Virus record (IMG/VR): IMGVR_UViG_3300009537_002640
Span: 142,496-206,495 of that record
DNA: 64,000 nucleotides
Reading direction: 5' to 3' (one strand)
The notes under the pieces are model-generated. The model saw nothing but the letters and a program-made list of their open reading frames with translations. It did no database searches and was not told the origin of the DNA. The position numbers and the translations under genes are program-made. Of this stretch, positions 39,961 through 63,470 are shown piece after piece; positions within the stretch are counted from its first letter, which is position 1; each line of letters begins with the position of its first letter.

Positions 39961-40114
39961 GAAAGTACCTCCAAAAATTAACCTACGGCTCTTCTGGTCG
40001 TATATTGGTCCGTCCCATAAGAGTCCATAGAGTATCAATTAGTTTTGATTTTCTTCGTCGGTATAACCGACAGGTGCACAACGAAGTCAAATCAGGTCTT
40101 ACAGAGAATCGAAA

Positions 40115-43698: not shown

Positions 43699-45347
43699 TA
43701 TAGAATCGAATTGCGTCCCTGAAAACGGCCATAGTTCCTCTTTACATAATCTTGTAGCATAGGCATGCTCCAATCAGATGGAGGGGGCAGTCCTCTTGGT
43801 CCCTTAAATACCTGTGACACCAGTCGCACTTGATTCTCTCTACTAAAACCCCTATTAGCTAGCCAAGTTTGTGCCGGTGTTCCATCAATAAACTTGTTAT
43901 TGAGTGCAGCTAAAATTTCTGCACCTGTAGGGTTCCACTTATGAGGCTGCTCTTCAACATCATAGGTTCCGCCACCATACTGAACTCCAGTCTGTCGCTC
44001 TTGTGGAGCTGCACCAGGCTGAGTACTTTGTTGCACTGTCTGTGACAGAGTATTAACCTTTTGGCTTATAGCATTCAATACAGCAGGATTTTTACCAACT
44101 ACCCTATAGTCTGTTTGTGGCACATTCATCCACTGACGCAAACGAGGAGACGAATTCATAAATGTCTCCAGCGCCTTTTGAGTATTTGGTCCATAAATGC
44201 CGTCTTCATTGATTCTGCTTGCGCCAGTACTATATGCCTGGTTAAGATAGTTCAAAGACTGTTGCATGCTTGTTACGGCTGGATTCCTTCTGGACAATTG
44301 TCGCTGAGTCCTCTCTTTCTTAGCCGCTCCAGCTGGCCCCCTAAGAGTAACTTGAGTTCCGTCGCCAAGTGTTAGAGCGCGTTTAGACAACCGCTCCTTA
44401 GAGCTTGCTGTAGTAGCAGCAGTGCCTAAGGCTTTTTCAAACAAGCCATGAAGCATAACTAAACTCTGAACGTTGTTCTTAACATCTTCAAGAGTTGCAC
44501 TCTTTGATGCCAACGCTTCTGCCAAGTTGTATCCTGCTTCTTCGCTCTTATTATCGAATTTAGGAGGTCCGCCAAAGCGCTCAGAAAGCTGGTCATACAT
44601 AGATTTTACTTTCTGCCCAAGCTCAGCAAGGTCCTTATTTAAAGTCTGCCCATATTCCTCGACAGCTTTCTGCATAACGGCCTTTTGTTCAGATGCTGCT
44701 TTTTCTTTTAGCTGTAACATAGCAGTTAGTGTCTTATCAATTGCCTGTTCAGCCTGCTCAGCATCACCAGATATCAAACCACCATAACCCCAATCGGTAA
44801 GTTTTGGCTTCAATTGCGTAGGAAACCACTCCTTAAGGCTAACAAGATACTTTGTAAGTTCTGTTAGAGCATTAAGCTTACCTTTGGTTTGTTGAAGTTT
44901 CTCTTCCTCAGACTCAGGAACATCCTGAACGCCCATAGCCGCCTTAAACTCTTTTAGTTTGCCGGTGACTTTTTCTATCTGAGCTTTGGTTTGTTCGTCC
45001 TTAGGATCTAAGTCCTCAAACCTTTCCACTAAATCATCCAAATTATCATCAGCCAGCTTAGTAGCCTGCCAAACAATAGTAGCTCCAAGAATAAGAGCCA
45101 TTGCCGCCCAGCCTGCTGGTCCTGCAGGAGCAAACATTCCAGCTACTGCAGCGGCTTTACCGGTGACACCAAGAGCTAATGCGGCTTTAGCAGCACCAAT
45201 AACTGCTGCCTCCGTAGCTACATTGCTTAATATAGCTTCGCCCCAGTCAGAACTAGCGGCTTCTTTCACTATAGCAGGGGCCATAGCAATACGCGCATAT
45301 TCCTGCATGATTTCGCTATTTTCAAACTGAGACATATAGCTCTCCAT
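43698..45347 (-). CDS. Putative ejection protein with membrane-like segment and peptidoglycan-binding domain, 549 aa
   Basis: FENSEIMQEYARIA motif; about 45-aa Ala/Gly hydrophobic stretch; VTSMQQSLN...DGIYGPNTQKAL PG-binding-1 signature; LSKRA linker. Confidence 0.7.
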   Translation of the reverse strand: MESYMSQFENSEIMQEYARIAMAPAIVKEAASSDWGEAILSNVATEAAVIGAAKAALALGVTGKAAAVAGMFAPAGPAGWAAMALILGATIVWQATKLADDNLDDLVERFEDLDPKDEQTKAQIEKVTGKLKEFKAAMGVQDVPESEEEKLQQTKGKLNALTELTKYLVSLKEWFPTQLKPKLTDWGYGGLISGDAEQAEQAIDKTLTAMLQLKEKAASEQKAVMQKAVEEYGQTLNKDLAELGQKVKSMYDQLSERFGGPPKFDNKSEEAGYNLAEALASKSATLEDVKNNVQSLVMLHGLFEKALGTAATTASSKERLSKRALTLGDGTQVTLRGPAGAAKKERTQRQLSRRNPAVTSMQQSLNYLNQAYSTGASRINEDGIYGPNTQKALETFMNSSPRLRQWMNVPQTDYRVVGKNPAVLNAISQKVNTLSQTVQQSTQPGAAPQERQTGVQYGGGTYDVEEQPHKWNPTGAEILAALNNKFIDGTPAQTWLANRGFSRENQVRLVSQVFKGPRGLPPPSDWSMPMLQDYVKRNYGRFQGRNSIL

Positions 45348-46969
45348 TAGATATTGATGAATTGCTTTATTTGATCAGGGGTTAGGCTTTTAACTGTTCC
45401 TGCAAACTCCTGCTCTAATTTGCCCATTGCAGCTTCTGGGGTAAAGAAACGAATCATAGATTTATAAGATTCTCTAGCCCTAGTACGCAAAGCTTGTTCT
45501 AATTCTGGTGCTCGGCGAAGAGGAAGTCTAGGAAATCTTTTTTGAAACGTCTGAAGCATCAACTGCTCTGCCGCTTGTGGACTCGGACCCTGTGGTTGAG
45601 CCTCCCCCGGCGCCGTCTCTTCTTTCTTTGCTGTTCCAGCACCCTGATTCTGTACTGCATCAAATATAGCTCTAAAGCCAGCCTTACTCTTTACGGCTGC
45701 CCATGCATCTGGATACTTTTGGCGTAACACGTTAGCAAGCTGCCTATCAAAAGGTTGATTTGCTTTCGGCTGTAAGCCCACCATAGTTCTAAGTCGATTT
45801 TGCAGCTGAGTTAGCCTCATCTTTTTCTTATCTTGAGTAGTAGCAGTACCAGATTCATCGAGATTAATTTCTCCTGCTCCAGCAGCCTCCCAACCCTCTG
45901 GGGTTGTAGGAAACCCTGTTTGAGGGTCAACCTTCTGCTGAGTAGTTGCTACTCCAGAATCTTGCTGTTGTCTGCGTTGAGCTAACATTTGTTGTTCTGC
46001 TTGGAGATTAGGAGACCATTGTGCAACCATTGGCTGCACAACACTAGGTAGGTCAGGAGCATTTTTGCCCCATCGAGATTGAAGTTTTTGTAGTGCACTC
46101 ATTGCTTCAGTCAAAGTAGGCATTGAGGTTCCTTGCCACTCACGAATTACCATAGGCTTATTGAATCTCCCACCCAAATCAGCTTGGTTTAGAGCATCCA
46201 ATACCTGCTTCTTAAATTGTTGTGCCGCAGGACTCGCAGCAACCTTTACTTTTTTTTTTAACAGTGAGTCAACACGGTCAGCCGCCTTAACGTACCCAAG
46301 CTTATCCAGTCGGTCAGCTAGATTTAGAAGAGCTGCGTAAGTTCCCTTGGGCATGCTTAACGCAACCTCTACATCCTTCTTTTGCTGCTCGACGATGGTC
46401 TCTACCAAATTCTCATCAGTTTTGCTGTGAGTAAGTTCGGTCCTAGTGCCACCACCCGGATGAGCCTTATCTACTAGCTGTTCGCCAGTCTCGCCAGATA
46501 CATCATAAAGCTTTTCTTCTGCGGTTTTCATATTCTCCATCTCTGCGGATTGTTGTTTGGTTAGGTCCAACTCAGGAAGTTTGGCGTGGGTAAGAGGCGT
46601 AACCCAAGCGTTTGTTACTTCTGTGTGAAACTTTTGAGCTGCAGCCTGTACTTCTGGATTATTAGCGTATGCTTTGGTCCAATGAGCAACTACGGCGTCA
46701 CGAATTCGACCCAAAAATAAGCCAAGCCTCTGATTAGGAATCTTGCCATAGTATTTGGCATGAAACTTATTCATAGCCTGAGTAGCATCCATAAATGGAT
46801 TCTTTGAGCGCATGAGCTGATTAATGGTTTGTCTCATCTCATTAGCAGCTGGACCAGCTTCTTTCAACAGCTCCTCATCTGAAGCTTGTTTGACTAAGCC
46901 CTTGTTAGCAGCAATGTTTGCAAACTCTCTCATCACTTCGCTATCATCAAAATTGTAATTGTGTCGCAT
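45347..46969 (-). CDS. Putative internal/ejection protein, 540 aa
   Basis: FDDSEVMREFANIA motif, AHPGGG-TELTHSKTD motif, helical-hairpin tag, Gln-rich linkers, degenerate PG-binding-like segment. Confidence 0.7.
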   Translation of the reverse strand: MRHNYNFDDSEVMREFANIAANKGLVKQASDEELLKEAGPAANEMRQTINQLMRSKNPFMDATQAMNKFHAKYYGKIPNQRLGLFLGRIRDAVVAHWTKAYANNPEVQAAAQKFHTEVTNAWVTPLTHAKLPELDLTKQQSAEMENMKTAEEKLYDVSGETGEQLVDKAHPGGGTRTELTHSKTDENLVETIVEQQKKDVEVALSMPKGTYAALLNLADRLDKLGYVKAADRVDSLLKKKVKVAASPAAQQFKKQVLDALNQADLGGRFNKPMVIREWQGTSMPTLTEAMSALQKLQSRWGKNAPDLPSVVQPMVAQWSPNLQAEQQMLAQRRQQQDSGVATTQQKVDPQTGFPTTPEGWEAAGAGEINLDESGTATTQDKKKMRLTQLQNRLRTMVGLQPKANQPFDRQLANVLRQKYPDAWAAVKSKAGFRAIFDAVQNQGAGTAKKEETAPGEAQPQGPSPQAAEQLMLQTFQKRFPRLPLRRAPELEQALRTRARESYKSMIRFFTPEAAMGKLEQEFAGTVKSLTPDQIKQFINI

Positions 46970-48748: not shown

Positions 48749-49096
48749 TTATTCAGTTTCTGCTTGCAAATCGCGAACGATTACACGCAACGCTTCATCA
48801 ACTGCTGAAGAAGCATCATCTGCACCAGCCTCATCCAACTCTGTAGCAAGCTTGGTAAGTTCCTGAAGAACACCTAGAACGACAGCTTTCTTTTTCTTCT
48901 TGTCATCCTTTTTGTCTTCTTTCTTCTTATCCTTCTTATCTTCCTTGTCGTCCTTCTTTTTCATAAAAGGAGGAAGCTTCTTATCATCCTTGTCGTCGTC
49001 CTTCTCATCATCTTCCTTTGCAGCAGTAACCATTAGCCCCTGCTTGCTCAAGAGATTGTGAAGTTCCAACATCATTTCATCGCCAGATCGTGACAT
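48749..49096 (-). CDS. Small K/D-rich head protein with hairpin tag, about 115 aa
   Basis: Start refined to 49096 (GGAG RBS); K/D/E low-complexity tract, then LTKLATELDEAGADDASSAVDEAL. Confidence 0.65.
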   Translation of the reverse strand: MSRSGDEMMLELHNLLSKQGLMVTAAKEDDEKDDDKDDKKLPPFMKKKDDKEDKKDKKKEDKKDDKKKKKAVVLGVLQELTKLATELDEAGADDASSAVDEALRVIVRDLQAETE

Positions 49097-49097
49097 G

Positions 49098-50486
49098 TTA
49101 TTCTCCTCTGAGTTTATCAATAAATTGACCTTCTGGACCATAATCTTCCATGTTCCACAAGTGCTCGCGGCTCTTAGTGTTTACTAAGTAGCCAGTATCT
49201 AAATCTTCTTCCGATAATTCCTCGACATCGGTTTCTCTATCAACATCTTCTTCGTTCTTAGGTTCCCATTCTTCTTCAACAAATGTCCCTTCTGGGGCCT
49301 CCTCTAAGGTTCCAAACATCGGGTCAACCATATATCGGCGCTCATCTTCCTCTCCCGGACGTCTTTTCAGCTCCTTGAAAACTCCGTGTGGCTCCCAACC
49401 TTTATCGGTGGGGTCTTTTTCTCGTTCTTCTTTAGGTCGTAAGTCTACAAAACGCTCCCAGTCTGCCGCAATCGCATCTAGTTCTGTAGCTAGTTCGTGC
49501 TGGCCTTTGACATCCAGAACTGTTGCCACTTTTGCAAGCCTCATGGCTATTTTCAAATATAATCCTTTGTTCATATTAGCCTCATGAAGAGAACGTCCAC
49601 CAGTAAGTTTTATGTACTCTTTTCCTAAATTATTTCTCCAGCCCTGTACGGCTCCTCTAAATTTACGCATCATTGGGGACTTAGGATCAGCGCCCTTATC
49701 CAACAGTTGCTTATATTTTTCCATCTCTATAGCTATGCGTGTTTTAAGTACCTTTACAACCCTATCTAGAAAAAAGTTTTTGTAACGTTCTGTCTCTTTC
49801 CCATCACCTATCTGAGCCCACATACCAATTCTTCTACCTAGCTTCTGAAATTTACTCTGGGTATTTAAATCTTTAGCAAACAGCTGTCCTTTTTCATCCG
49901 ATTCAGCCACCCTAACGATTGCTTCAAATAAATTTGGCAAATGTCTGGCTAGACTATGTGCCACACCTGACTTTTCCCAAGTATTAGATGCGTCTAGAAG
50001 CACCAGCGGATCATTTTCTATAAGAAACTTTGCACCCTCATGTATATATGGCTCAAATTGTGGGTCTGTTCTTCTACTATACTGATTAAAAAAGTAGATT
50101 ATTCGTTCTGGATTACCCATAACCTCGTTATCAAGCACCCAGCCAGTAATTGGATCGTAAAATGTCTCCTTCATATATCTGCCAGCCAAATATGCCATTG
50201 GATTTCGTCTGGCCACAGTAGCAGCATTTTGAGCATCTTCCAATTCTTCCGAACCACTATAAGTTTTTAGAACATCATCTAGGCTTAATTCATGCATCAT
50301 AGTAGGAGATATGCTTAACGATGATGAGGGAGTTTCTATGTACTTCACTCCAGGTGTCTGAGTAATATCTTCACCACTATACTCTACTGGTTCTTGCGTC
50401 TCAAATGTAGGAAGTGGTGGAATAGGAACTGGCAACTGGTCTTCGTCGTCACCCGACCACTTGAATATCATATTGCCTATTCGCAT
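49098..50486 (-). CDS. Putative internal head protein, 462 aa
   Basis: Helical core, hairpin tag LAKVATVLDVKGQHELATELDAIA, acidic tail. Confidence 0.65.
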   Translation of the reverse strand: MRIGNMIFKWSGDDEDQLPVPIPPLPTFETQEPVEYSGEDITQTPGVKYIETPSSSLSISPTMMHELSLDDVLKTYSGSEELEDAQNAATVARRNPMAYLAGRYMKETFYDPITGWVLDNEVMGNPERIIYFFNQYSRRTDPQFEPYIHEGAKFLIENDPLVLLDASNTWEKSGVAHSLARHLPNLFEAIVRVAESDEKGQLFAKDLNTQSKFQKLGRRIGMWAQIGDGKETERYKNFFLDRVVKVLKTRIAIEMEKYKQLLDKGADPKSPMMRKFRGAVQGWRNNLGKEYIKLTGGRSLHEANMNKGLYLKIAMRLAKVATVLDVKGQHELATELDAIAADWERFVDLRPKEEREKDPTDKGWEPHGVFKELKRRPGEEDERRYMVDPMFGTLEEAPEGTFVEEEWEPKNEEDVDRETDVEELSEEDLDTGYLVNTKSREHLWNMEDYGPEGQFIDKLRGE

Positions 50487-50498
50487 TAGCCATCCTCA

Positions 50499-50760: not shown

Positions 50761-53700
50761 TTAGCGCCAATTAAGCTGTGCCAACTGCTCATTTAGGCTT
50801 GGGGCATTAACTGGTTCTGGACTTGCGGTAACAGTCATTGATTGACCGGCACCATCAGCTCCTACACGGGGTAGGGAACCGCCCTTCCTAGAATTGTAGT
50901 TAGCTACTACACGCTTATTTGACTCAAAAGCTGCGTCATCAAAGTTCATCAGCTGGTCAACGTATCCCTCAAGGGATGCCTGAGTAGAAGCGATTAGCCC
51001 CTTCTCCTGAGCCTGGAGACCTACTGCATACGCTCTGCGTAGCTTGGTCTTGTACTCTCCGTTGTCAGCTTCCTTCTTCTTAGAAGCAAACTCTTTGCTC
51101 AAGTCTGCACCGAAGCTACCAGTGTCAGGACCTTGTGCCCAGAACTTCTTCCAGTAAGAAGCTGCTGCTGAGTCAACCTTACCCTCAGCCACCAACCTAT
51201 CAACATCTTCAGCCTTGAGTGCGCCCTTAACAATTGCCTCTTGAATGAGAGCAGCTGCCTCACGCACATTTCTTGGGCCAGATTCAGCGACATCTCGCAT
51301 TACATCGTGAATCTCAGAAATGGTTTCAACATGAGCACCGTCTGTCTTGGTATGAGTTAGCTCAGTTGTAGTACCCTTTCCGCCTGGATGAGCCTCAAAG
51401 TACTCTTTCTGAGTTGCATTCTCTGCCTTGCCCAAATCCAACTCATACTTTCCAAGGATGTCACCTGCTTGAGCAAGAAGAGCATCACGCTCAGCCTTGC
51501 GAGCAGCCATTACAGAATCTAGAGCTTCGTCAACTGCGAAGTCACCATCATCTGCCATCATTGCCCCACCACATGACTCATCATGTGCATGGTCCTCGGC
51601 ACACATTGGTGCATCTGCATCATCCTCGTCTTTCTTCTTCTTTTTCTCATCCTTCTCATATTCATCTTCTTCATCCTCGTCGGACTCTTTATCCTTTGCG
51701 AGGTCAGGATGCGTAAGCTCGCCCTCTGGACCTTTTTCTTGCTTCTCTTCCTGCAGAAGCTTCATTAGAGAAGCCTCATCAGCATCAGTTAGAGCATAGT
51801 CCATCTCGTCGCCCATACCCATCATGTCCATATCACCCATAGCCTTAGCTAGAAGTGCAGCACGATTTTGAGCACGGACCCTTAGAGCTTGTTCTAGAAG
51901 TTCAGCAGCCTTCTTCTCGGCGTCAGACTTTTCGGACTTCTTATCTTCCTTCTCGTCCTCATCATCTTCATCCTCGTCTTTCTTCTTTTTCTTAGCTGCT
52001 TCTTTCTTCTTCTTATCCTCTTTGTCATCCTCATCTTTGTCTTTCTTGTCTGCCTTTTCGTCTTCCTTATCATCGTCTTTCTTCTTGGCAGCTTCTTTTT
52101 TCTTATCTTTCTTCTTCTTATCCTCTTTATCATCCTCATCTTCATCGTCGTCTTTCTTCTTCTTAGCCAAGACAACTTCAGCTTGAGCAAGTAGAGTCTC
52201 GCTGTCGGCTAGAGCTTGAACAGCTGCACTAAGAACACGGCCCTTAGTTTCACCATCAAGGTCTTCTGCCTTATCAAGAGCTTCGCTCACAAGAGCTAGC
52301 TCATCAGCAGACTCATCTAGGAGGGAGTGAACCTCCATAGCCTCATCGCGGAACGCTAGAGTTTGTTCCATTGGACTTTCGGAACCACCTTCGCCTTCCT
52401 CGTCGACCTTAACTTCAATGTCGACTAGTTTCTCACCACCCTCATCAACAGCCTTGCGGATGTCGTCTAGAGCAGTTTCAATCTTAGTGAGGCCAGCTTC
52501 TACCTTGCCCTTGAGATCAGGCTCATCTTCCTTCTTCTCTGGTGCAGGTGCTTCACCCTCAGGAGCTGCAGGAGCAGCTTCTGGTGCAGGTGCGTCTCCG
52601 CCTGGAGCTGGTGCTCCACCTGCTAGAGGGTCAGCTCCACCGGGAGCCAAAGGATCTTGAGCACCCTTTAGGAGATATGAAACCTCATCAAAGCCTTCGG
52701 TGCGGATATGGCGAATAATATCCTTTCCGTAGTCCTTGGAGCTTAGATAATCCCAGTTCTCATCAAGCTGGTCATCAAAGATTTCCTTGCCGGTTGCAGT
52801 TAGAATCAACTTGTCACCAGCATACACATCCCAACGGGATGCATCCTTGACTAGATTGCCTTGGTCATCAGCGACCTTGGTAAACTTTGCACGAAGGCGG
52901 GCACGCAACCACATCTTCTTTACTTTCTCGTCGCCAGGAACCATACCATCGGTACCGCCCATGTCGTAGATGCCTTGTAGGTGCTTATCTTCGTTATCGC
53001 GGATTTTGTCCGCTTCCTCTTTTGGATACTTTTCCTTGCCAGGGGTTGGCTCATTGATACCACCACCGCCTAGCCAGTAAGCGCGACGTCGTAGTCTACG
53101 CTCCTGTAGTTGAGCTTCAGTTAGCTTTCCATCTTCAGCTGCATCCTTGTCAGTCTTCTGAACCTGCTCTAGCAGTGCTTGACGGCGTAGTTTACGCTCC
53201 TCAATCTCTGCTTTCTTCTTGTCGGCTTTACCGCCGCCAAGATTGCGGGTTTCCCACGTTCTTCCTTCATCGCCTGGGTGAAGACCTTCGGATCCAGTTT
53301 CTAATGGCTCGCCAACCATTTGCTTATCTTCAGTGTCACGGATTTTATCCGCTTCTTCCTTCTCATACTTAGGCTTACCTGGAGTAGGCTCATTAATGCC
53401 GCCTCCACCTAGCCAATATGCTCGACGTGCTTTGGCACGGGCACGTAATCTCGCAGAATTCATATTGTCGTCCTCCTTAGAGACTGTTTTTAACTCATTG
53501 AATGATTTACTTAGTTTTTCTATCTTGGATCGAAGGAGACGTATTTCATTAAAAAGAACACCCAGGTTTCCGTCTCCCTCTAGACTAGCCAATCTCTGAC
53601 TAGGCTCGACTGATATTGGTGTAGTGGTAGTGCGATACGTACCTTCACCGTTGCCAGCCATTGGACTTACACTTGGCTCTGACCCACCACCAGTAGCTGG

Positions 53701-54789
53701 TAAAGCAGGAGGAGCCTCGTCTGTTTCAGTATTGCCGATGCCGAATTTGGCAGCTAATACCTCTTCGATTTTTTCTTTTAGAGCAGGGTTGGTTACAGCC
53801 TTCAATGCCGCGACCAATTCACCCATATCCATATTTTCTAGACCATGTATGGGTGAGCTTTTAGCCTCTACTCTTTTAGTCTTTTGTTCGAGTTTCATTA
53901 GCGTGTTAAGCTTAGTTTGCATTTCGTTGATGTTGTCAGCAAGCGCTTGTAGTTCAGTTGGGTTTACACAGGCACCAACTAGCAACTCGTCAATACGCTC
54001 TTGTTTTTGTTCAGCGTAATTCTGCAAGCTTGCGACTATTTGTCGGATTTTTGCCAGACCATCAGCGCCATTAACTACGAGGCTTAGCTCGATTGGGCTT
54101 AGGTCTAGGTTCACTTCGCCATAATTTGTGCGTCCACGAACATGATGACAATAGTCTCGTTCGGTTCTCGCTACATGGCCACATTCGGTGCATACGGAGC
54201 GACCGACTGCCGTACCCATTGATACGCAATTAGCATATCCGGTTTCTACTTTGCGTGCTAGGTCAGGGTAATTCTTCCTATCTAACGCAAATAAAGCATG
54301 AACCCTCTTAAACTTAGGGTCATAGTAAGTATCGATTATTATTCCACGAATGCCGTCTACGCTATCACTCTTGTGGTCTTTGCATAGTGGCTTTCCTACC
54401 CAGTTCTTGTAGGCTTTTAGCAGCTCATCTTCAGGAAAAATGTCACCATTAGCATTCTTGTAGGGCTTTAGTCCATCAGGAGATTCCCATTTCACAGAGT
54501 GCTCGTTGCCCTTTACCTTAATAGGCACGAAAGACCCCTTAGCTGGCTTACCATTAGAAGCTAGAACGGGCTCACCTGTATCCTGGTCTATCAAACATGC
54601 TTCAGCAGCATGCATCATAATAGCGTGGCCATAAAGAAAGTCACTAGCTCTTGGAGCAATCCTCTTTAGCTTCTTGGCTAACTTAACAAACCTTTTGGCG
54701 ATTTGTTCGTCCGCTAGAGCTTCTTTCGGTGTCATCAGATTTGTGTCTGGTGAAAAGCTTAGATTCTCTCCGATTTTCCTAATAGCCAT
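50761..54789 (-). CDS. Prohead (maturation) protease fused to a large scaffold region, 1342 aa
   Basis: N-terminal HK97/herpes-type protease signatures: NGDIFPEDEL, KPLCKDH (H139), VSMG (S190), CTECG..YCHH zinc site, IELSLV..GAD; then about 1000 aa of acidic, K/D/E-rich and coiled-coil sequence. Confidence 0.85.
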   Translation of the reverse strand: MAIRKIGENLSFSPDTNLMTPKEALADEQIAKRFVKLAKKLKRIAPRASDFLYGHAIMMHAAEACLIDQDTGEPVLASNGKPAKGSFVPIKVKGNEHSVKWESPDGLKPYKNANGDIFPEDELLKAYKNWVGKPLCKDHKSDSVDGIRGIIIDTYYDPKFKRVHALFALDRKNYPDLARKVETGYANCVSMGTAVGRSVCTECGHVARTERDYCHHVRGRTNYGEVNLDLSPIELSLVVNGADGLAKIRQIVASLQNYAEQKQERIDELLVGACVNPTELQALADNINEMQTKLNTLMKLEQKTKRVEAKSSPIHGLENMDMGELVAALKAVTNPALKEKIEEVLAAKFGIGNTETDEAPPALPATGGGSEPSVSPMAGNGEGTYRTTTTPISVEPSQRLASLEGDGNLGVLFNEIRLLRSKIEKLSKSFNELKTVSKEDDNMNSARLRARAKARRAYWLGGGGINEPTPGKPKYEKEEADKIRDTEDKQMVGEPLETGSEGLHPGDEGRTWETRNLGGGKADKKKAEIEERKLRRQALLEQVQKTDKDAAEDGKLTEAQLQERRLRRRAYWLGGGGINEPTPGKEKYPKEEADKIRDNEDKHLQGIYDMGGTDGMVPGDEKVKKMWLRARLRAKFTKVADDQGNLVKDASRWDVYAGDKLILTATGKEIFDDQLDENWDYLSSKDYGKDIIRHIRTEGFDEVSYLLKGAQDPLAPGGADPLAGGAPAPGGDAPAPEAAPAAPEGEAPAPEKKEDEPDLKGKVEAGLTKIETALDDIRKAVDEGGEKLVDIEVKVDEEGEGGSESPMEQTLAFRDEAMEVHSLLDESADELALVSEALDKAEDLDGETKGRVLSAAVQALADSETLLAQAEVVLAKKKKDDDEDEDDKEDKKKKDKKKEAAKKKDDDKEDEKADKKDKDEDDKEDKKKKEAAKKKKKDEDEDDEDEKEDKKSEKSDAEKKAAELLEQALRVRAQNRAALLAKAMGDMDMMGMGDEMDYALTDADEASLMKLLQEEKQEKGPEGELTHPDLAKDKESDEDEEDEYEKDEKKKKKDEDDADAPMCAEDHAHDESCGGAMMADDGDFAVDEALDSVMAARKAERDALLAQAGDILGKYELDLGKAENATQKEYFEAHPGGKGTTTELTHTKTDGAHVETISEIHDVMRDVAESGPRNVREAAALIQEAIVKGALKAEDVDRLVAEGKVDSAAASYWKKFWAQGPDTGSFGADLSKEFASKKKEADNGEYKTKLRRAYAVGLQAQEKGLIASTQASLEGYVDQLMNFDDAAFESNKRVVANYNSRKGGSLPRVGADGAGQSMTVTASPEPVNAPSLNEQLAQLNWR

Positions 54790-54792
54790 TGA

Positions 54793-55530
54793 TTACTCCT
54801 CGTCTTCTTTTTCTTCGTTTAACCAGAAATTTTCCATTTCTTCTTGAGAAATCTCTTCTGTCTCGTGACCAAAGTCTTCATCGTCATCAGGGCCCCATTG
54901 CGACTTATTAAGAGCATCTTCTTCTTCATCTGGGTCTGGTAAATACTGCTCTTCCTCTCCAGGTTCCACTTCTTCTACGCCACCTGGACCTGCCCTAAAA
55001 GCACCAAGCATTTCCTCTTCGTCCAAATCTTGCTTTAGATTAACGTTGGGAGAATCAATGGCCTGGTCTGAACTAAAAAAGTCTAGAGCTGCTTGGCTTT
55101 CGTCGTCATTAGCTTCGTCCTTACCCAAATCTTTACGTAGCTTTTCGAAATCAGACTTAGAGGGACGCTTGCCGAAAGTCATTGTGTAAAAGTCTTTCTT
55201 AGCAGAGTCTAAGCATTCCTGAGTCCTTTCCATATCCTTAATTACTTTATCGAGTCCTAGTTCCTTTATAGCATCAGCAATATCGAAATAACGCATACGA
55301 CGAGATAATTCGCCCAGCCCCTTACAACCATTATGCATAGCGTCTTCTGCATCCACCAGAAACACTATCAGGCTCTTCTTAACATCATCATTCAAGCCTT
55401 TTAGAGGGGCCTTTGGACGTGCAGCCTTAGACCGCAACACACCATCGACAGCGCCAGCCAAGTCGAATTTTTTCTCTTGGTCCAGTTTGTCAGCAAGCCT
55501 AATCAAAGCATTAATATGCTTAGCGTCCAT
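54793..55530 (-). CDS. Putative internal head protein, about 245 aa
   Basis: Start refined to 55530 (AGGAGG RBS); N-terminal hairpin tag; acidic tail. Confidence 0.65.
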   Translation of the reverse strand: MDAKHINALIRLADKLDQEKKFDLAGAVDGVLRSKAARPKAPLKGLNDDVKKSLIVFLVDAEDAMHNGCKGLGELSRRMRYFDIADAIKELGLDKVIKDMERTQECLDSAKKDFYTMTFGKRPSKSDFEKLRKDLGKDEANDDESQAALDFFSSDQAIDSPNVNLKQDLDEEEMLGAFRAGPGGVEEVEPGEEEQYLPDPDEEEDALNKSQWGPDDDEDFGHETEEISQEEMENFWLNEEKEDEE

Positions 55531-55702
55531 GTTCACTCTCCTCCTGATTTTCTGTGCCACACTTGCATAAGACATCGTTATTTTCACCATCCAAAGCCAC
55601 TACGGTAAGGGGTTTTCCACACTTGTCACACTTCTTTAGTTCCAAGTCGTCATCATAAAATCCCTTAATTGGCTCAGGGTCACCTGTTTTTACGAATGCC
55701 AT
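55520..55702 (-). CDS. Small zinc-ribbon protein, 60 aa
   Basis: CDKCG...CKCG; start refined to 55702. Confidence 0.6.
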   Translation of the reverse strand: MAFVKTGDPEPIKGFYDDDLELKKCDKCGKPLTVVALDGENNDVLCKCGTENQEESEHGR

Positions 55703-55703
55703 G

Positions 55704-56294: not shown

Positions 56295-56377
56295 TAGTTG
56301 CCCTCACCATATTTATATGCCCTCAGATTCCTCATAAAGAGTAGATTATACACTGGTCCGTATATATCTATCGACAA

Positions 56378-56387
56378 ATATTAATAG
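56378..56387 (-). promoter_or_regulatory. Putative late promoter motif (CTATTAATAT)
   Basis: Intergenic TAYTAATA copy, 84 nt upstream of the unit that includes the protease/scaffold gene. Confidence 0.5.
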
Positions 56388-56400
56388 ATTTCAAGGGCAT

Positions 56401-57177
56401 TTATCGAGTCGAATCCCCGTAAGGACTCTCTAAATTACCATACCCGCTGTAAAAATAGGCATCGCTAAAGCCTTGAAACATACCAGCATTCTGATTATCA
56501 GTCACTCCTGTGCCAACTCTACCGTTAGAGCGAACCAAATCATCTAGCCCGTCTAGTGCCTCATCTGAGTTGTAGTACTCTGCCATCTCTTCTAACTCTT
56601 CGTCAGTCAATTCTGGCTCAGGAGGCATATTTTCAAGTGCCTCTAGCTCTTCTTCAGTATACTCTTTAACAGCATTATCCAACTCAGTGGCTTCTTCAAA
56701 TCGACCTTTTTCATCTAAGTCAGATGCTATTTGTAGAAGCCTAGCAGCTAATCGTGCAGATTCTGGTACATTAAACATACTATAACCTCCGCCTGTGCCA
56801 TCTCCACCTATATAACCCTGATTTTCAACGTTAGATTGCTCTTCCGGAATATAATCGGATGTCAAATCCTCTAAAGATGAGTCAATTGCTGCCATTGTAT
56901 CATAAAGAACCTTTGCCTTATCTATGAATCCGGCTTCTTCCAGATACTTAGCAAGGTCTGAAAGCTTAGACAAAGTGTGGGTTTCGGCATCCATACTATC
57001 ATTAGCATCGTCGTCTTTGTGTTTAAAGTACTCTACCTGCTGCTCTCTCTTTTCAGCCTGGCCACGGGAACTATAAGGGCCGCCAAGCTGTTTACGCTTG
57101 CCGTCCTTACCCTTCTTTCGAGAGAATAGCACGTATCCTTTGTCGGTTTTCCTAATGATTGCTGTTTTTATTAGCAT
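56401..57177 (-). CDS. Putative internal head protein with two hairpin tags, 258 aa
   Basis: LIKTA N-terminus, small basic domain (GYVLFS..KQLGGPY.SRGQAEKREQQVEYFKH), two copies of the tag. Confidence 0.65.
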   Translation of the reverse strand: MLIKTAIIRKTDKGYVLFSRKKGKDGKRKQLGGPYSSRGQAEKREQQVEYFKHKDDDANDSMDAETHTLSKLSDLAKYLEEAGFIDKAKVLYDTMAAIDSSLEDLTSDYIPEEQSNVENQGYIGGDGTGGGYSMFNVPESARLAARLLQIASDLDEKGRFEEATELDNAVKEYTEEELEALENMPPEPELTDEELEEMAEYYNSDEALDGLDDLVRSNGRVGTGVTDNQNAGMFQGFSDAYFYSGYGNLESPYGDSTR

Positions 57178-57184
57178 ATCGCAC

Positions 57185-57553
57185 TTATTCCTTAGTTTCC
57201 GGTGTTAATCGTTTATCTCGTATATCTTTAGATACTTCTTTCCAGGCTGGCTGTAATACTATAATGTCGTGCTGGCCATTTTGTCTGATAGCCGCCACAA
57301 AGAAAAATGTCTTAGACTTTCTTATTTCCGCTTTTTCGCCAGAACGCAAAGTGAATCTAGTTAATGGCTCAGCATTAGCATAGTCCCAAGCCATTATCTC
57401 GTGTATATCTCTTTTTTTTAACCCTTGCATTTTAGGGTCGTTTGCAAATAGTCTTTGCCAATATTCACGCGCAGAACGGCTTACACCTACACCAGCACTG
57501 GTAGGGGTAAACACGCCGCATTTGTAAATATCGTGTCGAATAGATAACATCAT
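57185..57553 (-). CDS. Hypothetical protein, about 122 aa
   Basis: Start refined to 57553 (ATGA overlap). Confidence 0.5.
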   Translation of the reverse strand: MMLSIRHDIYKCGVFTPTSAGVGVSRSAREYWQRLFANDPKMQGLKKRDIHEIMAWDYANAEPLTRFTLRSGEKAEIRKSKTFFFVAAIRQNGQHDIIVLQPAWKEVSKDIRDKRLTPETKE

Positions 57554-58260
57554 TTTCCAACTAGTCGCAAAAATCTCTCTATCTTGTGTGATGGAATGCA
57601 TATCCCTAAATGGTCAAATGCTGTATGCCCCATGGAAAGTAGACCTATAACCTCTCCGCTATCATTGAATACAGGGCTACCGGAGTTTCCTCCTGCTGCC
57701 GCTGCCGATATGATAAGCCTATCTCGGATTAATGGAGTAACATCTTTTGACGGATTGATAACCACACCAGGCTCTTCATACATCATAAACCCCAATGGTG
57801 CGCCCACTAACATCACTTTGTCTTTTCGCTTCACTGTACTATAGTCAGCGAACTTAACAGGCTTTAGATTATGCTTTGGTAGTCTCATCAAACAAAGGTC
57901 GTTTGATTCATCCATCTCCAGCATCTCTACGCCGTTTCGTTGTATCTCTACATCTTCTAGTAGATACGTTAACTTGATATTGTCTTCTAGTATGTCCATT
58001 ACTTGAAGCTCAAATATAGCAACACAGACATGACCAGCTGTTATTAAATGGTCTTCATCATAAGCAAAAGCAGTTCCGTTGATCTCGTTAACACTTTTTC
58101 TCGCTTTTACTGAAACCATGCCCACTGAGCGGGCAAGGTTGGTTGGCAAATCCTCTCTTCTAGCTTCCTCTTGCTGAGTAACTACTACTGGCTCGGGAGC
58201 ATGTACATTTATAGAACACCCCGTAAGCATTAACACTAGTAGCACAAAGATGCGTTTCAT
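57550..58260 (-). CDS. Lipoprotein trypsin-fold (S1/HtrA-like) serine protease, 236 aa
   Basis: MKRIFVLLVLMLTG-C lipobox signal; TAGH, DLCL and GNSGSP catalytic triad motifs; no PDZ domain. Confidence 0.88.
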   Translation of the reverse strand: MKRIFVLLVLMLTGCSINVHAPEPVVVTQQEEARREDLPTNLARSVGMVSVKARKSVNEINGTAFAYDEDHLITAGHVCVAIFELQVMDILEDNIKLTYLLEDVEIQRNGVEMLEMDESNDLCLMRLPKHNLKPVKFADYSTVKRKDKVMLVGAPLGFMMYEEPGVVINPSKDVTPLIRDRLIISAAAAGGNSGSPVFNDSGEVIGLLSMGHTAFDHLGICIPSHKIERFLRLVGK

Positions 58261-58886
58261 TCGTCTGAGGAACGCTCTTTGGTTTTTGCCATTGTATCTA
58301 ACATGTCATCAAACTGACTAGCTAGTTTGGTGTCTCCTTGCTCATCTAAAAAGCTTGCAATTGAAACCAGGTCCTCTGGTTGCATCCTTAAGCCTACTCG
58401 CTGAGCCAGGTCAGCCACTACTTCATCAATAGCCCTGGCCTCGTCATAAAGACCATCCTTATCTAGCTTGTAAGCAACTTTGAATAATTTAGCTAACATG
58501 GAATCCCTCCTTAAACTAGATTCTTTTTCTAACTCCTTCTGAAGCTCAATTTCCTTCTTCAGCAAGAATGATAGACGTTTTGCCTCTTCTTCTGTTATAT
58601 CATCTCTTTCCTTTAGGCGATGTATGTTCTCTGCAACCTCATCGAGTTGCTTTCGTGTTCGTTCTTTGGATGCCTTCTTTTCTGGAACTCGGTCCCGTTT
58701 AGATATTTGCTTTCTTTTCTTTTCAGTGAGATTATGAAACCATATATCTCCTATAGTGGCAGCTATCTGTTCCTCAGAGTACTCAGGAGAGTTTTTCTTT
58801 ATCTCCTTTTTCATCTTATCAAACCACTTCTTAGGTGGGCGTTGTTTCTTTTGAGATTTTTCTTTTGCAATTACCCGTTGAGTCAT
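58257..58886 (-). CDS. Basic helical protein with two hairpin tags, about 209 aa
   Basis: Start refined to 58886 (AAGGAG RBS); LFKVAYKLDKDGLYDEARAIDEVV and LVSIASFLDEQGDTKLASQFDDML. Confidence 0.65.
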   Translation of the reverse strand: MTQRVIAKEKSQKKQRPPKKWFDKMKKEIKKNSPEYSEEQIAATIGDIWFHNLTEKKRKQISKRDRVPEKKASKERTRKQLDEVAENIHRLKERDDITEEEAKRLSFLLKKEIELQKELEKESSLRRDSMLAKLFKVAYKLDKDGLYDEARAIDEVVADLAQRVGLRMQPEDLVSIASFLDEQGDTKLASQFDDMLDTMAKTKERSSDE

Positions 58887-58897
58887 TTGAAAGCTCC

Positions 58898-59218
58898 TTA
58901 TACAATATCTCGTGTCTTTCCGTTTCGTGGACGGCCATAGTGAACAGTAGAGGTGGTGCTGTCGCTTAGGCGGAAGCCAGAACCTACTTCCCAAAACATT
59001 TTGACAAAATCTTCGCTTATGTAAAACTCATTACCTTTATCGTTCCTAAGCTTTAGAATACCACAGTCTTCATCGTAATCTATAGGGGTAGCGATAACGA
59101 TTGTGTAGGACTGTGCATCACCATCAGCATAAGATAGCCACTCAGAATCCAGGTCGATAAAAAGCTCTAACTTCTTGTTAAGAAAGTTAGTAGCTATGAA
59201 TTTGCCATTTTTTGCCAT
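58898..59218 (-). CDS. Small beta-rich hypothetical protein (possible Sm-like barrel), 106 aa
   Basis: GAGG RBS; beta-strand pattern only, fold call tentative. Confidence 0.55.
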   Translation of the reverse strand: MAKNGKFIATNFLNKKLELFIDLDSEWLSYADGDAQSYTIVIATPIDYDEDCGILKLRNDKGNEFYISEDFVKMFWEVGSGFRLSDSTTSTVHYGRPRNGKTRDIV

Positions 59219-59230
59219 TTTAATCCTCTA

Positions 59231-59629
59231 TTAAGTATTGTATCGGGCTTTTCCACGAGTACCAACATATTTTAGTCGTATATGTCTATTGGACGCATCA
59301 ACTTCCCAAATTGCCGCATAAGCTGATCTTCCGCCTGTTAAATGACAATGAAAGAGTCCAGAAGATAATAGTTTACTAAAGTTAGGCCATTTATACAGGT
59401 ATGGACTTTTTTTCAGATCCGTAATAAGATTATGTGCAGTTTCTTGAATCCGCTTGGGCAATTTCGAAATCCCCTTTAATACTGACTTCGGAATATCCAC
59501 AGTCCATTCTTTTGCAGTTTCTGGGTCGGAAGAGTATGAAATTAATATCTCATCTATTTGATCAGCAATATCATAATATCCTAGTTTGTCTAGTCTATTA
59601 GCCACATTGCACAGTGTTTTCAAAAACAT
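59231..59629 (-). CDS. RelE/ParE-superfamily toxin-like domain with N-terminal hairpin tag, 132 aa
   Basis: WTVDIPKSVLKGISKLPKRIQ...FSKL...FHCHLTGG..YAAIWEV...IRLKYVGTRGKARY matches a RelE-like pattern; GGAGG RBS. Confidence 0.7.
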   Translation of the reverse strand: MFLKTLCNVANRLDKLGYYDIADQIDEILISYSSDPETAKEWTVDIPKSVLKGISKLPKRIQETAHNLITDLKKSPYLYKWPNFSKLLSSGLFHCHLTGGRSAYAAIWEVDASNRHIRLKYVGTRGKARYNT

Positions 59630-62600
59630 TATTCCCCTCCATTTCCCTGTATAGCTCTAGTCGTCCCGCTCGTTTTGACAAAGCTTTTGGTTTAGAGCTG
59701 GCAAATCTAGAATCCCTTTTGAGTTTAGCAACAGAATCATAAAACATTACCATCTCGTATGGAACGTCCAGTACGTTTCTATTATCCTCTATTCGTATGC
59801 TCTTATGTGGAGGCATCTTTTCAAGAACATTCTGTATTGTCTTCAAGTAGCTGTCTGAAAGTGCACCAGGAACATCAAAGGTAGAAAACATATCCATTTT
59901 AGCAACCCTCATCCAACCCTTAGATAATGCATCCTCATAAGTAGGTTCTTCGTCCGGACCAAAGTAACCAAAAAACTCTGGATGGTCCTTTATAAAGAGT
60001 ATATGTCCATTAGGCGCATCATAGAGCTTGCCATCCGGAGAAAACCACCAGGCATTGTAATCTGCTCGCTTAGATAGTGATTTCTTACCAAATGGAATAC
60101 GCTTCTTATTTCCACAGCTCCATACTTGAACATGGTTAGCTGTCCAAGAACCACTTGGTACTTCGCCATCGAACTTCTCTTTAGGTGGTTCCATGTATTC
60201 AAGTGTCACGTGAGGTTTGTAGGATGGAAAATGATCATCAACCTCTACGCCTGCTTCAATCAAAGCTTTTTTCAGTGCCTTGTGCAACTTATGTAACTCT
60301 TTGGACACCACAGCCATCTTAGCAATCTTACAATTATCAGAATGCTTGGTTGCAGGAAAGTAAGTCGGCTTCTTATCTAGTTCTAACTTTATAGGGCTAA
60401 AGTCCTTGATAACATCACGTACCACGCCATACACAGTCTCCTGCTTTTTCTCAGGCACATCTCCTATGTACAATACTGTTACATGAGTGGCGCTATCGTC
60501 GTGTTCGCCTAAAGAGGGAAATTGCTTAGACATGTCTTTTGGCAGAAGTATAAACACACCAGCACCATGTTTTCTGTCCTTTTTCTTCTCGTCTCTTTTA
60601 GAAAGCTTCTTTACGCCATCCCTAATTGATAGTGATTTCTTGCTTACCATTTCCTCTGCCCACTCTGGCAGTTCAAGCTCCATCTTATTAGGGTCTTTTA
60701 TGTTGCGTGCATTATTGGCGCTCTCTATGTAGTCAGGATAGTCCTTGTCCAAACCTAAGTCAAAGAAGGAATCAGGGTTGGTATCTACTAATTGAACTAT
60801 TGCGCCGCGACCAAGCTCAGGGAACTTATGATGTAAGTGATAGTAGAAGAATGCACGTGCATCTTGCTGAGACAAAGCCTCAGCTGCAGCTTCTAGTAAC
60901 TCCTTAAACTCATCTTCTTCGCGCTCATGATACTTGAATACAAAATAGAACTTGGCATTGTCCTCTAACATGTTTTTCAATGCAAGAGCCTCTTCCTCTG
61001 GGCATTCTTTATGTAGCCCGCGATAGAAGAATGCATCAGGGTCGTTCTCTGCTAATTGTTTAGCTTCGTTGTCGCTAACATCGTGAATATCGTGCTCTGG
61101 CTCTTCCTCGTCTCTGTGTCTAAAGATAGGAGCCTTCTCAAACCAGTCACCCATCTCATCATCTTCGCCATGACCCATGTCTTCGTCATTAAGCTCATTG
61201 TTGATTTCAAATATAAGGTCTGGCACAGTTTGATTGTGTGCTATTTTGAAAGCATCAGCAAACTTGCTAACTATTTCATTAGGCACACCAGATGCCACCA
61301 TGTCTTCATACAGATACGGAGCTATGGTTATTTGGTCATAGTACTCTGGCTCTGCATAAGCTCTACCCAAATACCTCTGCTTGGCACTCGTTAAAGCCTG
61401 TGGGTCGAACTTAGCTTCGTATATGTTGACATGAACAGCATTATTTACCGGCTCAATTTTAGCCGTCATTCTCACCGGGACATCTTTGTCTCCTGACAAT
61501 ACCTTTACCGCTCTAGCTATAGCATTTAGGTCTGCTCCAGAAACATCAAATGCTGTTCCCTTAAGGTGTGCTGGATGTTTCTCTGGCACTTTAGGCGGGC
61601 CAACTATGTAGCGAAATTGCTTAGTCAGAATCCTGGCCTTTTGTGCAGGGTCAGTTACAGTAGGGTAGTATATGTTAGCACGATATCTTTTCCACGCATT
61701 TTCAATGATTTTAGTCTGGTCTTCTAGTGTGCGAGAGCCAGAAGTTAAACGTGCCCCAGGTGGTAAAAATGGGCTTAGCATTGCCCATGCACTTAGTATA
61801 GTTTCATTAATCTTAGCCCTAGGAGAAATATTTAGTGCTTTCCTCTGATCCTCAGATAACTGCACTCCTCCCTCCTCTTTAGGAACAACACTTACAGATG
61901 GAGAAAGTTTCTCTTTCATTTCCCTAACTCTCTCTGTATGCTGCTCGGTTAGCGCCCTAACAGATAGTGATTGGCGCTTAACCATACGAGGCTGTTGTTT
62001 TTGATAAAGAGCGGCAACGAAATCTTTCATAGGAGGCATGACAACACTGCTGCCCAAAACTACATGAATAGCGTTATTGGCTGGCTCCACCAAAGAGCTT
62101 ATAACCTGAATAGAGCCAGGGAACGCTGCAGCAACCTCCATAAGGGTCTTATTAATGGCCCTAAGATTACTTCCAGTAATATCAAATGCTACACCTTCCT
62201 GATGTTCAGACTCGCCAACGAAAGCTATATCTGGTACCTGTACACCCTTAGGAGACTTATTCCTAATATAGCTTACCATTTGATTGAGGCGCCTCTTCTC
62301 TCTGCGATTAAAATCCTTGTCGTTTACGGCCTTCCAATACATTACTCTCAACTCTTGGTCTGTTATCCCAAGCTCTTTAGAGAAAGTAGTATGATAGACA
62401 CCCTGGTTTCGCTTCCACTCGCCAGGCTTACCAGCGTAACTTCTCCAGTACTCCAAAACTATCTTGGCCTGTTCACCTGCGCCACGATAAGCACTACTAA
62501 GGTATGTATTGTTTGGCATAAACGGAGCTATTATTCTCCATGCGCGTTCAATGCTTGGGGTTAACGTCGCGGACTCGTACACATTAGTGACGTTTTTATT

Positions 62601-63470
62601 AACGTCTACCAGTTGTGCATAGTTCTCCCATCGAGACGGGTCAGTTACCGGCGCGTTTACATCTACAGGTGGAGTAGGAGTATGCTTAATGGTGCTTACA
62701 GGAAGCTCTTCTTCCTCCATATATGATTGCGCTCGTATGCTAAAAGCCTTCTTTTCCTTTTTCTCTTCTTTACCTTCGTGCTTTTCTACAAGTTCAGGGT
62801 CAAGATACTGATTCTTGAGAGTAGAGGCTTTGTGACCAACTATATCTGCCACCTCCTCTAGTGCCTCTTTAAAATCCTTCTTCTTTAACATTTCCTTCAT
62901 AAGACGATTGGCGTGAAACCCTCGCAAATCTTTAGCGCTGATATCAAATGGTTTCAGATATCTATTAACGGCACGATCCCAAATCTTCTTACCATCGATT
63001 TCAAATATGAAGTCATCAGCCTTTTTACCCTTCATAAGGTCTCTGATAGCCTTAATAACCTCATTATTTTCAAGCACAACGTTTTGTTCCACTTCACCTT
63101 TTCCAGGAAAATCAAAAGTCATTTTCCCTGAGCCGCCCTTAACGTGCTTTACTTTAAGAGTAGATGCTCCGTAGGTTCCTTCACGAGCAGATTCCTCATT
63201 ACCAATGCGCATAGCTGTCTCATCCATAATTCCAACTATGGCTGCAATAGCTTTGGTTCGTTCATCATCGGACTTTAGGTCTTCGCGATACTGCTTACGC
63301 ACCTTATCAAGCTCTTTTTCCAACTTCTTGAGCTTATCTTTCTTCTCTTCCCAGCGCTTTTCAACATGCTTCTCGTCGTATACCCACACGTATCCCTTAT
63401 CGGTCTTCTTCTTTTCCTTGTAAGCCGGTTTGTCAGAGGTAACTTTTGCTCGTTTACTTAGCAGGTTCAT
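59598..63470 (-). CDS. Polyvalent polyprotein: DNA topoisomerase IB + two M15 Zn-peptidases + 4 helical repeats + 2H phosphoesterase + C-terminal domain, 1290 aa
   Basis: TopIB R88, K124, K180/R183, H213, Y222; M15 motifs S[AG]xR..H..G.AFD..H twice (H423/D430/H469 and H635/D642/H680); HVT996-998 and HVT1087-1089. Confidence 0.85.
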   Translation of the reverse strand: MNLLSKRAKVTSDKPAYKEKKKTDKGYVWVYDEKHVEKRWEEKKDKLKKLEKELDKVRKQYREDLKSDDERTKAIAAIVGIMDETAMRIGNEESAREGTYGASTLKVKHVKGGSGKMTFDFPGKGEVEQNVVLENNEVIKAIRDLMKGKKADDFIFEIDGKKIWDRAVNRYLKPFDISAKDLRGFHANRLMKEMLKKKDFKEALEEVADIVGHKASTLKNQYLDPELVEKHEGKEEKKEKKAFSIRAQSYMEEEELPVSTIKHTPTPPVDVNAPVTDPSRWENYAQLVDVNKNVTNVYESATLTPSIERAWRIIAPFMPNNTYLSSAYRGAGEQAKIVLEYWRSYAGKPGEWKRNQGVYHTTFSKELGITDQELRVMYWKAVNDKDFNRREKRRLNQMVSYIRNKSPKGVQVPDIAFVGESEHQEGVAFDITGSNLRAINKTLMEVAAAFPGSIQVISSLVEPANNAIHVVLGSSVVMPPMKDFVAALYQKQQPRMVKRQSLSVRALTEQHTERVREMKEKLSPSVSVVPKEEGGVQLSEDQRKALNISPRAKINETILSAWAMLSPFLPPGARLTSGSRTLEDQTKIIENAWKRYRANIYYPTVTDPAQKARILTKQFRYIVGPPKVPEKHPAHLKGTAFDVSGADLNAIARAVKVLSGDKDVPVRMTAKIEPVNNAVHVNIYEAKFDPQALTSAKQRYLGRAYAEPEYYDQITIAPYLYEDMVASGVPNEIVSKFADAFKIAHNQTVPDLIFEINNELNDEDMGHGEDDEMGDWFEKAPIFRHRDEEEPEHDIHDVSDNEAKQLAENDPDAFFYRGLHKECPEEEALALKNMLEDNAKFYFVFKYHEREEDEFKELLEAAAEALSQQDARAFFYYHLHHKFPELGRGAIVQLVDTNPDSFFDLGLDKDYPDYIESANNARNIKDPNKMELELPEWAEEMVSKKSLSIRDGVKKLSKRDEKKKDRKHGAGVFILLPKDMSKQFPSLGEHDDSATHVTVLYIGDVPEKKQETVYGVVRDVIKDFSPIKLELDKKPTYFPATKHSDNCKIAKMAVVSKELHKLHKALKKALIEAGVEVDDHFPSYKPHVTLEYMEPPKEKFDGEVPSGSWTANHVQVWSCGNKKRIPFGKKSLSKRADYNAWWFSPDGKLYDAPNGHILFIKDHPEFFGYFGPDEEPTYEDALSKGWMRVAKMDMFSTFDVPGALSDSYLKTIQNVLEKMPPHKSIRIEDNRNVLDVPYEMVMFYDSVAKLKRDSRFASSKPKALSKRAGRLELYREMEGNNVFENTVQCG

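Follow-up and report, generated by a model that had tools for sequence, protein, structure and literature searches.

The window analysed here, 64,000 nucleotides long, forms the end of a 206,495-bp IMG/VR virus record, and its minus strand carries every large ORF. At one site a short gene for a RelE-like protein overlaps the end of a gene for a long polyprotein, with the following features.

59231..59629, minus strand: gene for a tagged RelE-like protein of 132 aa, stop codon at 59231-59233
59531..59629, minus strand: two-helix hairpin tag, residues 1-33, from an independent profile and the AF2 model
59504..59530, minus strand: variable linker, residues 34-42, pLDDT about 66 in the AF2 model
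59234..59503, minus strand: RelE/YoeB/YafQ-like toxin domain, residues 43-132, with H94, C95, H96, W108, R125 and Y130
59636..59640, minus strand: Shine-Dalgarno sequence GGAGG, read from the sequence within the end of the polyprotein ORF
59598..63470, minus strand: polyprotein of 1290 aa with topoisomerase IB, a VanY-like region, a 2'-5' RNA ligase/LigT-like domain and domain X
59673..60059, minus strand: domain X, the orphan C-terminal domain of the polyprotein, residues 1138-1266, between two linker motifs
59225..60070, minus strand: 846-bp cassette absent from the closest relative, L098, by blastn and tblastn
58898..59218, minus strand: small beta-barrel protein of 106 aa, a conserved head-module gene

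The 132-aa protein consists of two modules, a hairpin tag of the head-module type and a RelE-superfamily toxin fold, joined by a variable linker, and its sole methionine is M1. Its reading frame is +1 relative to that of the polyprotein, and with the polyprotein TAA at 59598-59600 and the toxin ORF starting at 59629, the two ORFs overlap by 32 nt, as the earlier note had stated. The GGAGG lies 6 nt from the ATG. There is no need to assume a programmed frameshift joining the toxin to the polyprotein, since the ATG has a strong ribosome-binding site before it and the start codons of the two relatives come right after the upstream stop. The toxin is a separate ORF with its own ribosome-binding site, fused to neither a MuF domain, a portal nor a multi-effector polypeptide, and no MuF or portal match was obtained for it in Pfam or PHROGs. 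Two homologues, P0002 and P0003, have the same tag-toxin architecture, and in the linker region (residues 31-40) 0-2 of the 10 residues are identical among the three tagged toxins.

The RelE/ParE-type pattern noticed earlier in the remainder of the protein is borne out by PHROGs, a profile of 87 homologues, the ESM Atlas and AF2/Foldseek. PHROGs matches were phrog_32175 (E 4.9e-7) and phrog_1213, annotated 'RelE-like toxin' (E 3.4e-3); the 87-homologue profile matched aRelE, HP0892, YoeB and RelE in the PDB, weakly but consistently; and the ESM Atlas model aligned with RelE/ParE/YoeB/YafQ clusters at TM 0.78-0.89 over residues ~29-132 (40-130 in most rows). The AF2 model (pLDDT 88.5) has strand b43-45, helices a48-55 and a59-74 and four strands, giving the two N-terminal helices on a 4-5-stranded antiparallel sheet of the RelE/ParE fold, which is a compact alpha/beta fold of some 85-100 residues. 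Foldseek of this model against the PDB returned 18 matches at E<=1e-3, nearly all of them RelE, YoeB or YafQ, headed by aRelE (1wmi, E 1.6e-5, TM 0.82 by target) and including YoeB (7v5y), V. cholerae YafQ (9lew) and E. coli RelE, also in its ribosome-bound form; the structure prediction against RelE, HigB and YoeB that had been proposed as a check yields a RelE-like fold. No Pfam or NCBIfam toxin family, ParE_toxin, YafQ_toxin and YoeB_toxin included, matched the toxin at E<=1; among the 87 homologues, three matched YafQ_toxin and three ParE-like_toxin. An exhaustive HMMER search gave 148 representatives, mostly of 88-100 aa and at that length 35-45% identical to the toxin, and many relatives are named 'mRNA-degrading endonuclease RelE' in their source databases.

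The near-invariant positions of the family are kept in the phage protein: H94 (85/87), C95 (85/87), H96 (82/87), W108 (86/87) and Y130 (84/87). Position 125, His in 58 and Arg in 26 of the 87 members, is Arg here, and three family-typical residues are altered (G75S, V105A and E126G). When HMMER aligns the family with HP0892, a toxin of H. pylori, HCHL falls opposite ECHL and GTH opposite GSH, positions that we take to be those of the histidines of YafQ-type toxins and of R81/Y87 of RelE. RelE-family proteins are ribosome-dependent mRNases and ParE-family proteins inhibit gyrase. Because the top structural matches are ribosome-dependent RNases and H94-C95-H96, H/R125 and Y130 are kept, model and sequence together favour the ribosome-dependent RNase branch (RelE/YoeB/YafQ/HigB) over a ParE gyrase poison, and from the conserved residues we infer that the toxin is an RNase. 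Some proteins of 218-513 aa (P0034, P0049, P0075, P0078, P0081, P0088, P0132 and P0141) end in a domain of the same subfamily, behind long low-complexity N-terminal regions and, in some, signal-peptide-like starts, which suggests that cellular organisms have independently taken up the toxin as an effector domain for delivery.

The hairpin that precedes the toxin has the consensus L-V-K-L-A-N-x-L-D-x-x-G-x4-A-D-x-V-D-x-x-I, and its helices span residues 2-15 and 19-33 in the AF2 model. A local HMM and the regular expression L-x-x-x-A-N-x-L-D-x-x-G-x4-A-D-x-x-D-x-x-L found nine copies, distributed over eight ORFs of the 206-kb record and confined to positions 45350-59656 of the window, against 0-1 in residue-shuffled proteins. 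An independent profile, built from 68 distinct tags of related phages with the tags of this genome and of L003/L004 left out, matches toxin residues about 4-29 at E 2.7e-7 and, with the AF2 two-helix hairpin, upholds the earlier claim that the toxin carries an N-terminal head-protein tag. Seven matches of this profile reach E<=0.01, namely the toxin and six head-module ORFs, all between 45350 and 59656; one further, weaker match (E 0.29) extends the span to 42560-59656. The tagged proteins other than the toxin include the following.

58257..58994, minus strand: protein with two tag copies near the C-terminus, likely start ATG at 58889
56401..57177, minus strand: acidic protein of 258 aa, by regular expression and profile
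54793..55590, minus strand: acidic protein of 265 aa with the tag near the N-terminus, by regular expression and profile
49098..50486, minus strand: protein of 462 aa, by regular expression and profile
48749..49141, minus strand: protein of 130 aa with the tag near the C-terminus, by regular expression and profile
45347..46969, minus strand: protein of 540 aa, whose tag is most like that of the toxin (both RLDKLGY)

As judged from these searches, the tag is confined to the head module of this phage, where it forms a short element common to otherwise unrelated proteins. It is abundant in relatives, with dozens of copies upstream of their capsid gene, and in their head proteins it stands at the N-terminus, internally or at the C-terminus, sometimes twice in one protein; in phage G, the first 30 kb of the genome, which take in the head module up to and past the capsid gene, yielded no tag. 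The sequence pattern resembles a single TPR/HAT-type hairpin, and phmmer gave a weak match to a pre-mRNA splicing protein, presumably a HAT-repeat factor. A recent duplication of the tag of the 540-aa protein as the source of the toxin's tag was rejected because 37/69 nt are identical and most codons have changed. In related phages (L091:7658-8356 and L093:15893-18493) some tagged proteins carry DUF5661, and others a Cys-rich motif, RYCPDH...QCP.DG, matched by no library; a MuF-like assignment of these Cys-rich proteins was dropped as unsupported by Pfam and PHROGs.

The surroundings of the toxin gene are those of a phage head module; these further genes were identified in it and beyond its downstream end.

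57550..58260, minus strand: trypsin-like serine peptidase with a lipoprotein-type signal (Trypsin_2, E 4.8e-15)
50761..54789, minus strand: protein of 1342 aa with an N-terminal head-maturation protease domain (phrog_18299, E 1.3e-15)
38935..40038, minus strand: major capsid protein of 367 aa (phrog_2522, E 1.2e-78), at the downstream end of the head module
33600-37187: tail-sheath gene

The capsid gene lies ~19 kb downstream of the toxin site. Its product has 184 relatives in IMG/VR, of which 80 loci, 65-93% identical, were kept, several of them on contigs of 316-442 kb; across the aligned relatives capsid-protein identity is 70-93%. The nearest cultured phage by capsid protein is Bacillus phage G, at 53% identity, and a search for a cultured member of the clade found none. 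In the closest contigs the portal (phrog_16240, E about 1e-57 to 1e-61) comes first, then a small ORF, the topoisomerase-IB polyprotein and an ORF of 105-109 aa, followed by further small ORFs that in 3/4 relatives include the trypsin-like peptidase; in the window, the prohead protease/scaffold protein and the capsid protein come downstream of the small ORFs. Because of this gene order in the closest contigs and in the window, the toxin gene is placed inside the portal-to-capsid assembly module of a jumbo myovirus. It is encoded among virion genes, at a site that follows the polyprotein and that in relatives has the portal nearby. An ORF end at 63764-64000 (minus strand), rich in Gly, Pro and Met and running off the contig, should by position be the C-terminus of the portal gene, since the portal holds that place in L098 and L101.

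Beyond its protease domain the 1342-aa protein is long, charged and scaffold-like, with very long Lys/Glu/Asp-rich low-complexity stretches and a block of ~35 residues present twice (RRAYWLGGGGINEPTPGK...EEADKIRD). A head-module ORF of 549 aa (43698-45347, minus strand) contains a weak peptidoglycan-binding/endolysin-like region and is reminiscent of gp22/23, endolysin genes that phage G has in its head module. Downstream of the tail genes comes a giant ORF, 3811 aa long (5801-17236, minus strand).

In the polyprotein, Pfam recognises topoisomerase I (E 7.5e-31) and 2'-5' RNA ligase/LigT (E 3.5e-10), with VanY below the cut-off; a second, similar VanY-like region is visible by eye. The motif x[LF]S[IVK]R[ADG] occurs in it six times, at residues 242, 501, 946, 955, 1131 and 1263, marking the domain borders, and in no other head-module protein, the toxin included. 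The trypsin-like peptidase, encoded three genes downstream, is a candidate for cutting after the Arg of this motif; it is kept in L098, L100 and L091 and absent from L101 and L102. The C-terminal part of the polyprotein varies among close relatives (1129-1322 aa). Domain X has no Pfam or PHROG match and no homologue was found for it; its ESM feature matches to YunG-like clusters score below 0.9 and serve as a lead only.

The cassette that distinguishes this locus from L098, whose proteins are otherwise 62-84% identical to those here, comprises polyprotein residues from about 1134 to 1290 (the last ~155) and the toxin gene; domain X, of about 125 aa, came in with the toxin. GC content over the toxin is 0.36, against about 0.42 nearby. 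The toxin profile is unmatched in 20/20 related jumbo-phage records, including complete genomes of 435 and 442 kb, and the tag-toxin architecture was found in only three proteins among ~5.8 billion non-redundant proteins and 1.8 billion cluster representatives. Nothing was found in IMG/VR when the toxin, the 106-aa protein or the three-sequence alignment served as query, nor in one metagenome scan with that alignment. Since only three tagged toxins occur in the databases searched, the trait is rare and may be short-lived.

The other two tagged toxins lie on contigs of 750 and 1073 bp, where a LigD 3'-phosphoesterase domain precedes the toxin (L003:2-286 and L004:2-451; PF13298, E 1e-28 and 5e-18), and at one of them a homologue of the 106-aa gene follows it. 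Among the three proteins the tag is 66-73% identical with dN 0.20-0.25, and the toxin domain 42-51% identical with dN 0.51-0.58, synonymous sites being saturated. From these values, both tag and toxin domain are under purifying selection, the tag most strongly, which fits binding of the tag to a conserved partner. At all three loci an enzyme acting on 3'-phosphate or 2',3'-cyclic phosphate ends precedes the toxin; at L003 and L004 this is the LigD phosphoesterase, at the present locus LigT plus domain X (60100-60500). RelE-type cleavage leaves 3'-phosphate or 2',3'-cyclic phosphate ends, and because these are the ends on which such enzymes act, the pairing of toxin and end-acting enzyme may be functional; LigT is also present in relatives without the toxin.

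Bacterial homologues of the toxin have a partner that the phage locus lacks. In the 4/4 examined (P0004, P0006, P0008 and P0015), an HTH_3/HTH_31 protein of 100-187 aa is encoded downstream, an order, toxin first, that is that of HigBA. At the phage locus the upstream neighbour is the polyprotein and the downstream neighbour the beta-barrel head gene, and no HTH_3 match above the cut-off was found in the 206-kb record, in agreement with the earlier remark that neither neighbour looks like a RelB-type antitoxin. A search for an RNA antitoxin matched no Rfam family anywhere in the window, and no tandem repeats were seen close to the gene. The record covers 206 kb, against 435-442 kb in complete relatives, and since over half of the genome is thus unseen, an antitoxin encoded in trans is possible. 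The downstream 106-aa ORF, suggested earlier as a partner for a rescue assay, proved to be a core head-module gene rather than a dedicated antitoxin, by fold and by distribution. It has no HTH match; its model is a small barrel of the SH3/Sm/Tudor kind, for which no PDB entry scored below E 1e-3; and among its 21 homologues are those that directly follow the polyprotein, at 56-78% identity, in four relatives (five contigs) without the toxin, the toxin-free contigs compared being L098/L099, L100 and L101/L102. It is this presence next to the polyprotein in toxin-free relatives that argues against a dedicated antitoxin. Within the cassette, domain X is the sole candidate for an encoded neutraliser.

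Precedents are known for the separate elements of this arrangement: predicted packaged RelE-fold RNases, T4 capsid-targeting sequences, MuF toxins and phage RelE-like toxins. Compared with type II RelE toxins of HigBA order, the phage toxin has the same fold and keeps the H-C-H and (H/R)...Y positions, but it is without an antitoxin, carries a 40-residue N-terminal extension, lies in a head-assembly operon and is unmatched by any Pfam or NCBIfam toxin model. Iyer et al. described predicted virion-packaged polyvalent effectors encoded near virion-component genes, among them PBECR RNases, which have the RelE fold and are joined to MuF or portal domains (PMC5512222), and MuF polymorphic toxins are predicted to be packaged and injected (PMC5576092). 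PBECR stands for phage barnase/EndoU/colicin-RelE fold and covers six families. Like these, the protein described here is a putative RelE-fold RNase encoded among virion genes near portal or polyvalent proteins; unlike them, it is of the classical TA type and is encoded by a separate small gene rather than as a polyprotein domain, and the proposed targeting element is a short hairpin in place of a MuF/portal fusion. The capsid-targeting sequence of T4, which is found on diverse internal proteins (IPI-III and Alt; PMC3012670), is likewise a short element shared by unrelated head-module proteins whose cargo is diverse and fast-evolving. It is, however, an N-terminal peptide removed by the prohead protease, whereas the tag here is a 30-residue helical hairpin that may be N-terminal, internal or C-terminal, is sometimes present twice and has no recognised cleavage site. 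In P22 the scaffolding protein attaches to the inner procapsid surface through a helix-turn-helix (PMC9965877), which has been used for loading foreign cargo (PMC9962691). The hairpin is like this C-terminal element in size and shape and in its proposed docking to an HK97-fold shell, but there is no sequence relationship, the P22 scaffold leaves the procapsid, and binding of the tag to the capsid is for our phage a proposal only.

Taken together, the best-supported reading of the toxin's origin is the capture of a bacterial TA toxin without its HigA-like antitoxin. The captured toxin is assigned to the HigB/RelE type because of its fold, its family residues and its homologues with a downstream HTH_3 antitoxin. 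We tentatively propose, with a confidence that stops somewhat short of even, that this HigB/RelE-type mRNA interferase was captured antitoxin-less by a jumbo phage distantly related to phage G, fused to the hairpin and turned into capsid-loaded cargo. The toxin would be made late, along with the head genes, and the hairpin would dock it on the assembling procapsid, at the shell interior or the scaffold core; docking would both keep the toxin off the ribosomes of the producer cell and load it into the head. In the next infection the toxin would enter with the DNA and cleave ribosome-bound host mRNA. This would shut off translation at once, or interfere with the host or rival elements. Docking by the tag and packaging of the toxin are suggested by analogy, and virion delivery by context and the example of other phages. 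Scaffolds usually leave or are degraded before DNA entry, and because the tag is also found on scaffold-like proteins, a tagged protein need not stay in the mature head. A broader version, possible but on balance unlikely, holds that in this clade of environmental jumbo phages related to phage G the portable TPR-like hairpin is a general cargo-loading tag for the capsid and the toxin a virion-delivered shut-off weapon acting with end-modifying enzymes. New cargo would then be added by placing a gene behind the tag, and LigT (here) or the LigD phosphoesterase (at the two other loci) could make the RNA damage irreparable.

The position and company of the tag bear on how the toxin would be held. 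The tag stands at any position and in several copies, also in acidic scaffold-like proteins, its pattern is like that of a single TPR/HAT-type hairpin, and the toxin gene is co-oriented with the late head genes in a region where promoter- and terminator-like sites are no commoner than in shuffles; all this would suit a tag that only gathers proteins at the assembly site, or links tags in a TPR-like manner, while the toxin acts or is sequestered in the producer cell, for example in a shut-off of residual host translation late in infection. We consider this rather improbable, as the late mRNAs of the phage itself would not be spared by a RelE-type RNase and the restriction of the tag to the portal-capsid module better fits a capsid-linked role. 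The hairpin might instead be a built-in antitoxin that folds back on the active face until it is released. Helices of antitoxins neutralise RelE-type toxins, the C-terminal helix of RelB lying on the RelE active face, and a flexible linker would permit such fold-back; but this hairpin is also present on at least seven non-toxin proteins here and on dozens in toxin-free relatives, the linker has no protease motif, and the model (pTM 0.69, pLDDT 88.5) gives no sign of fixed packing between tag and domain, which makes this explanation exceedingly improbable. The earlier suggestion that the tag keeps the toxin inactive until it is cleaved likewise has no support, the linker motif of the polyprotein being absent from the toxin and the tag being internal or C-terminal elsewhere.

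An ordinary TA or exclusion module, whose neutraliser would be domain X or a product of the unsequenced half of the genome, is a decidedly improbable account of the locus. The relB reading frame overlaps relE, and domain X and the toxin share one 846-bp cassette with a comparable upstream overlap, in a record that covers under half of a typical genome of the clade. Against this, the bacterial homologues use a downstream HTH_3 antitoxin and no HTH_3 protein was found in the 206 kb, while domain X, which has no detectable relatives, is absent at the other two tagged-toxin loci. It is also very unlikely, in our estimation, that the RelE fold no longer works as a nuclease and is instead a component of the head that binds RNA or ribosomes or has a structural role. 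The changes from family-typical residues (G75S, V105A and E126G) would allow this, and Iyer et al. proposed such a role for the inactive PBECR domain in the MuF protein of phage Mu (PMC5512222); yet all near-invariant candidate catalytic positions (H94, C95, H96, H/R125 and Y130) are kept, and the toxin domain is under purifying selection in three diverged copies.

The locus pairs an antitoxin-less toxin with a clean, testable hypothesis about its tag, and it marks the end of the portal-proximal polyprotein as a hotspot for swaps of cargo cassettes among close relatives. If the capture and capsid loading of the toxin are as we propose, they would show how a bacterial TA module can lead directly to an effector delivered by a phage, with sequestration in the capsid doing away with the need for an antitoxin. 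If the hairpin is indeed a loading tag, it would provide a simple, testable rule for recognising the proteins that uncultured 400-kb phages carry into cells, as well as a natural handle for putting foreign proteins into large capsids.
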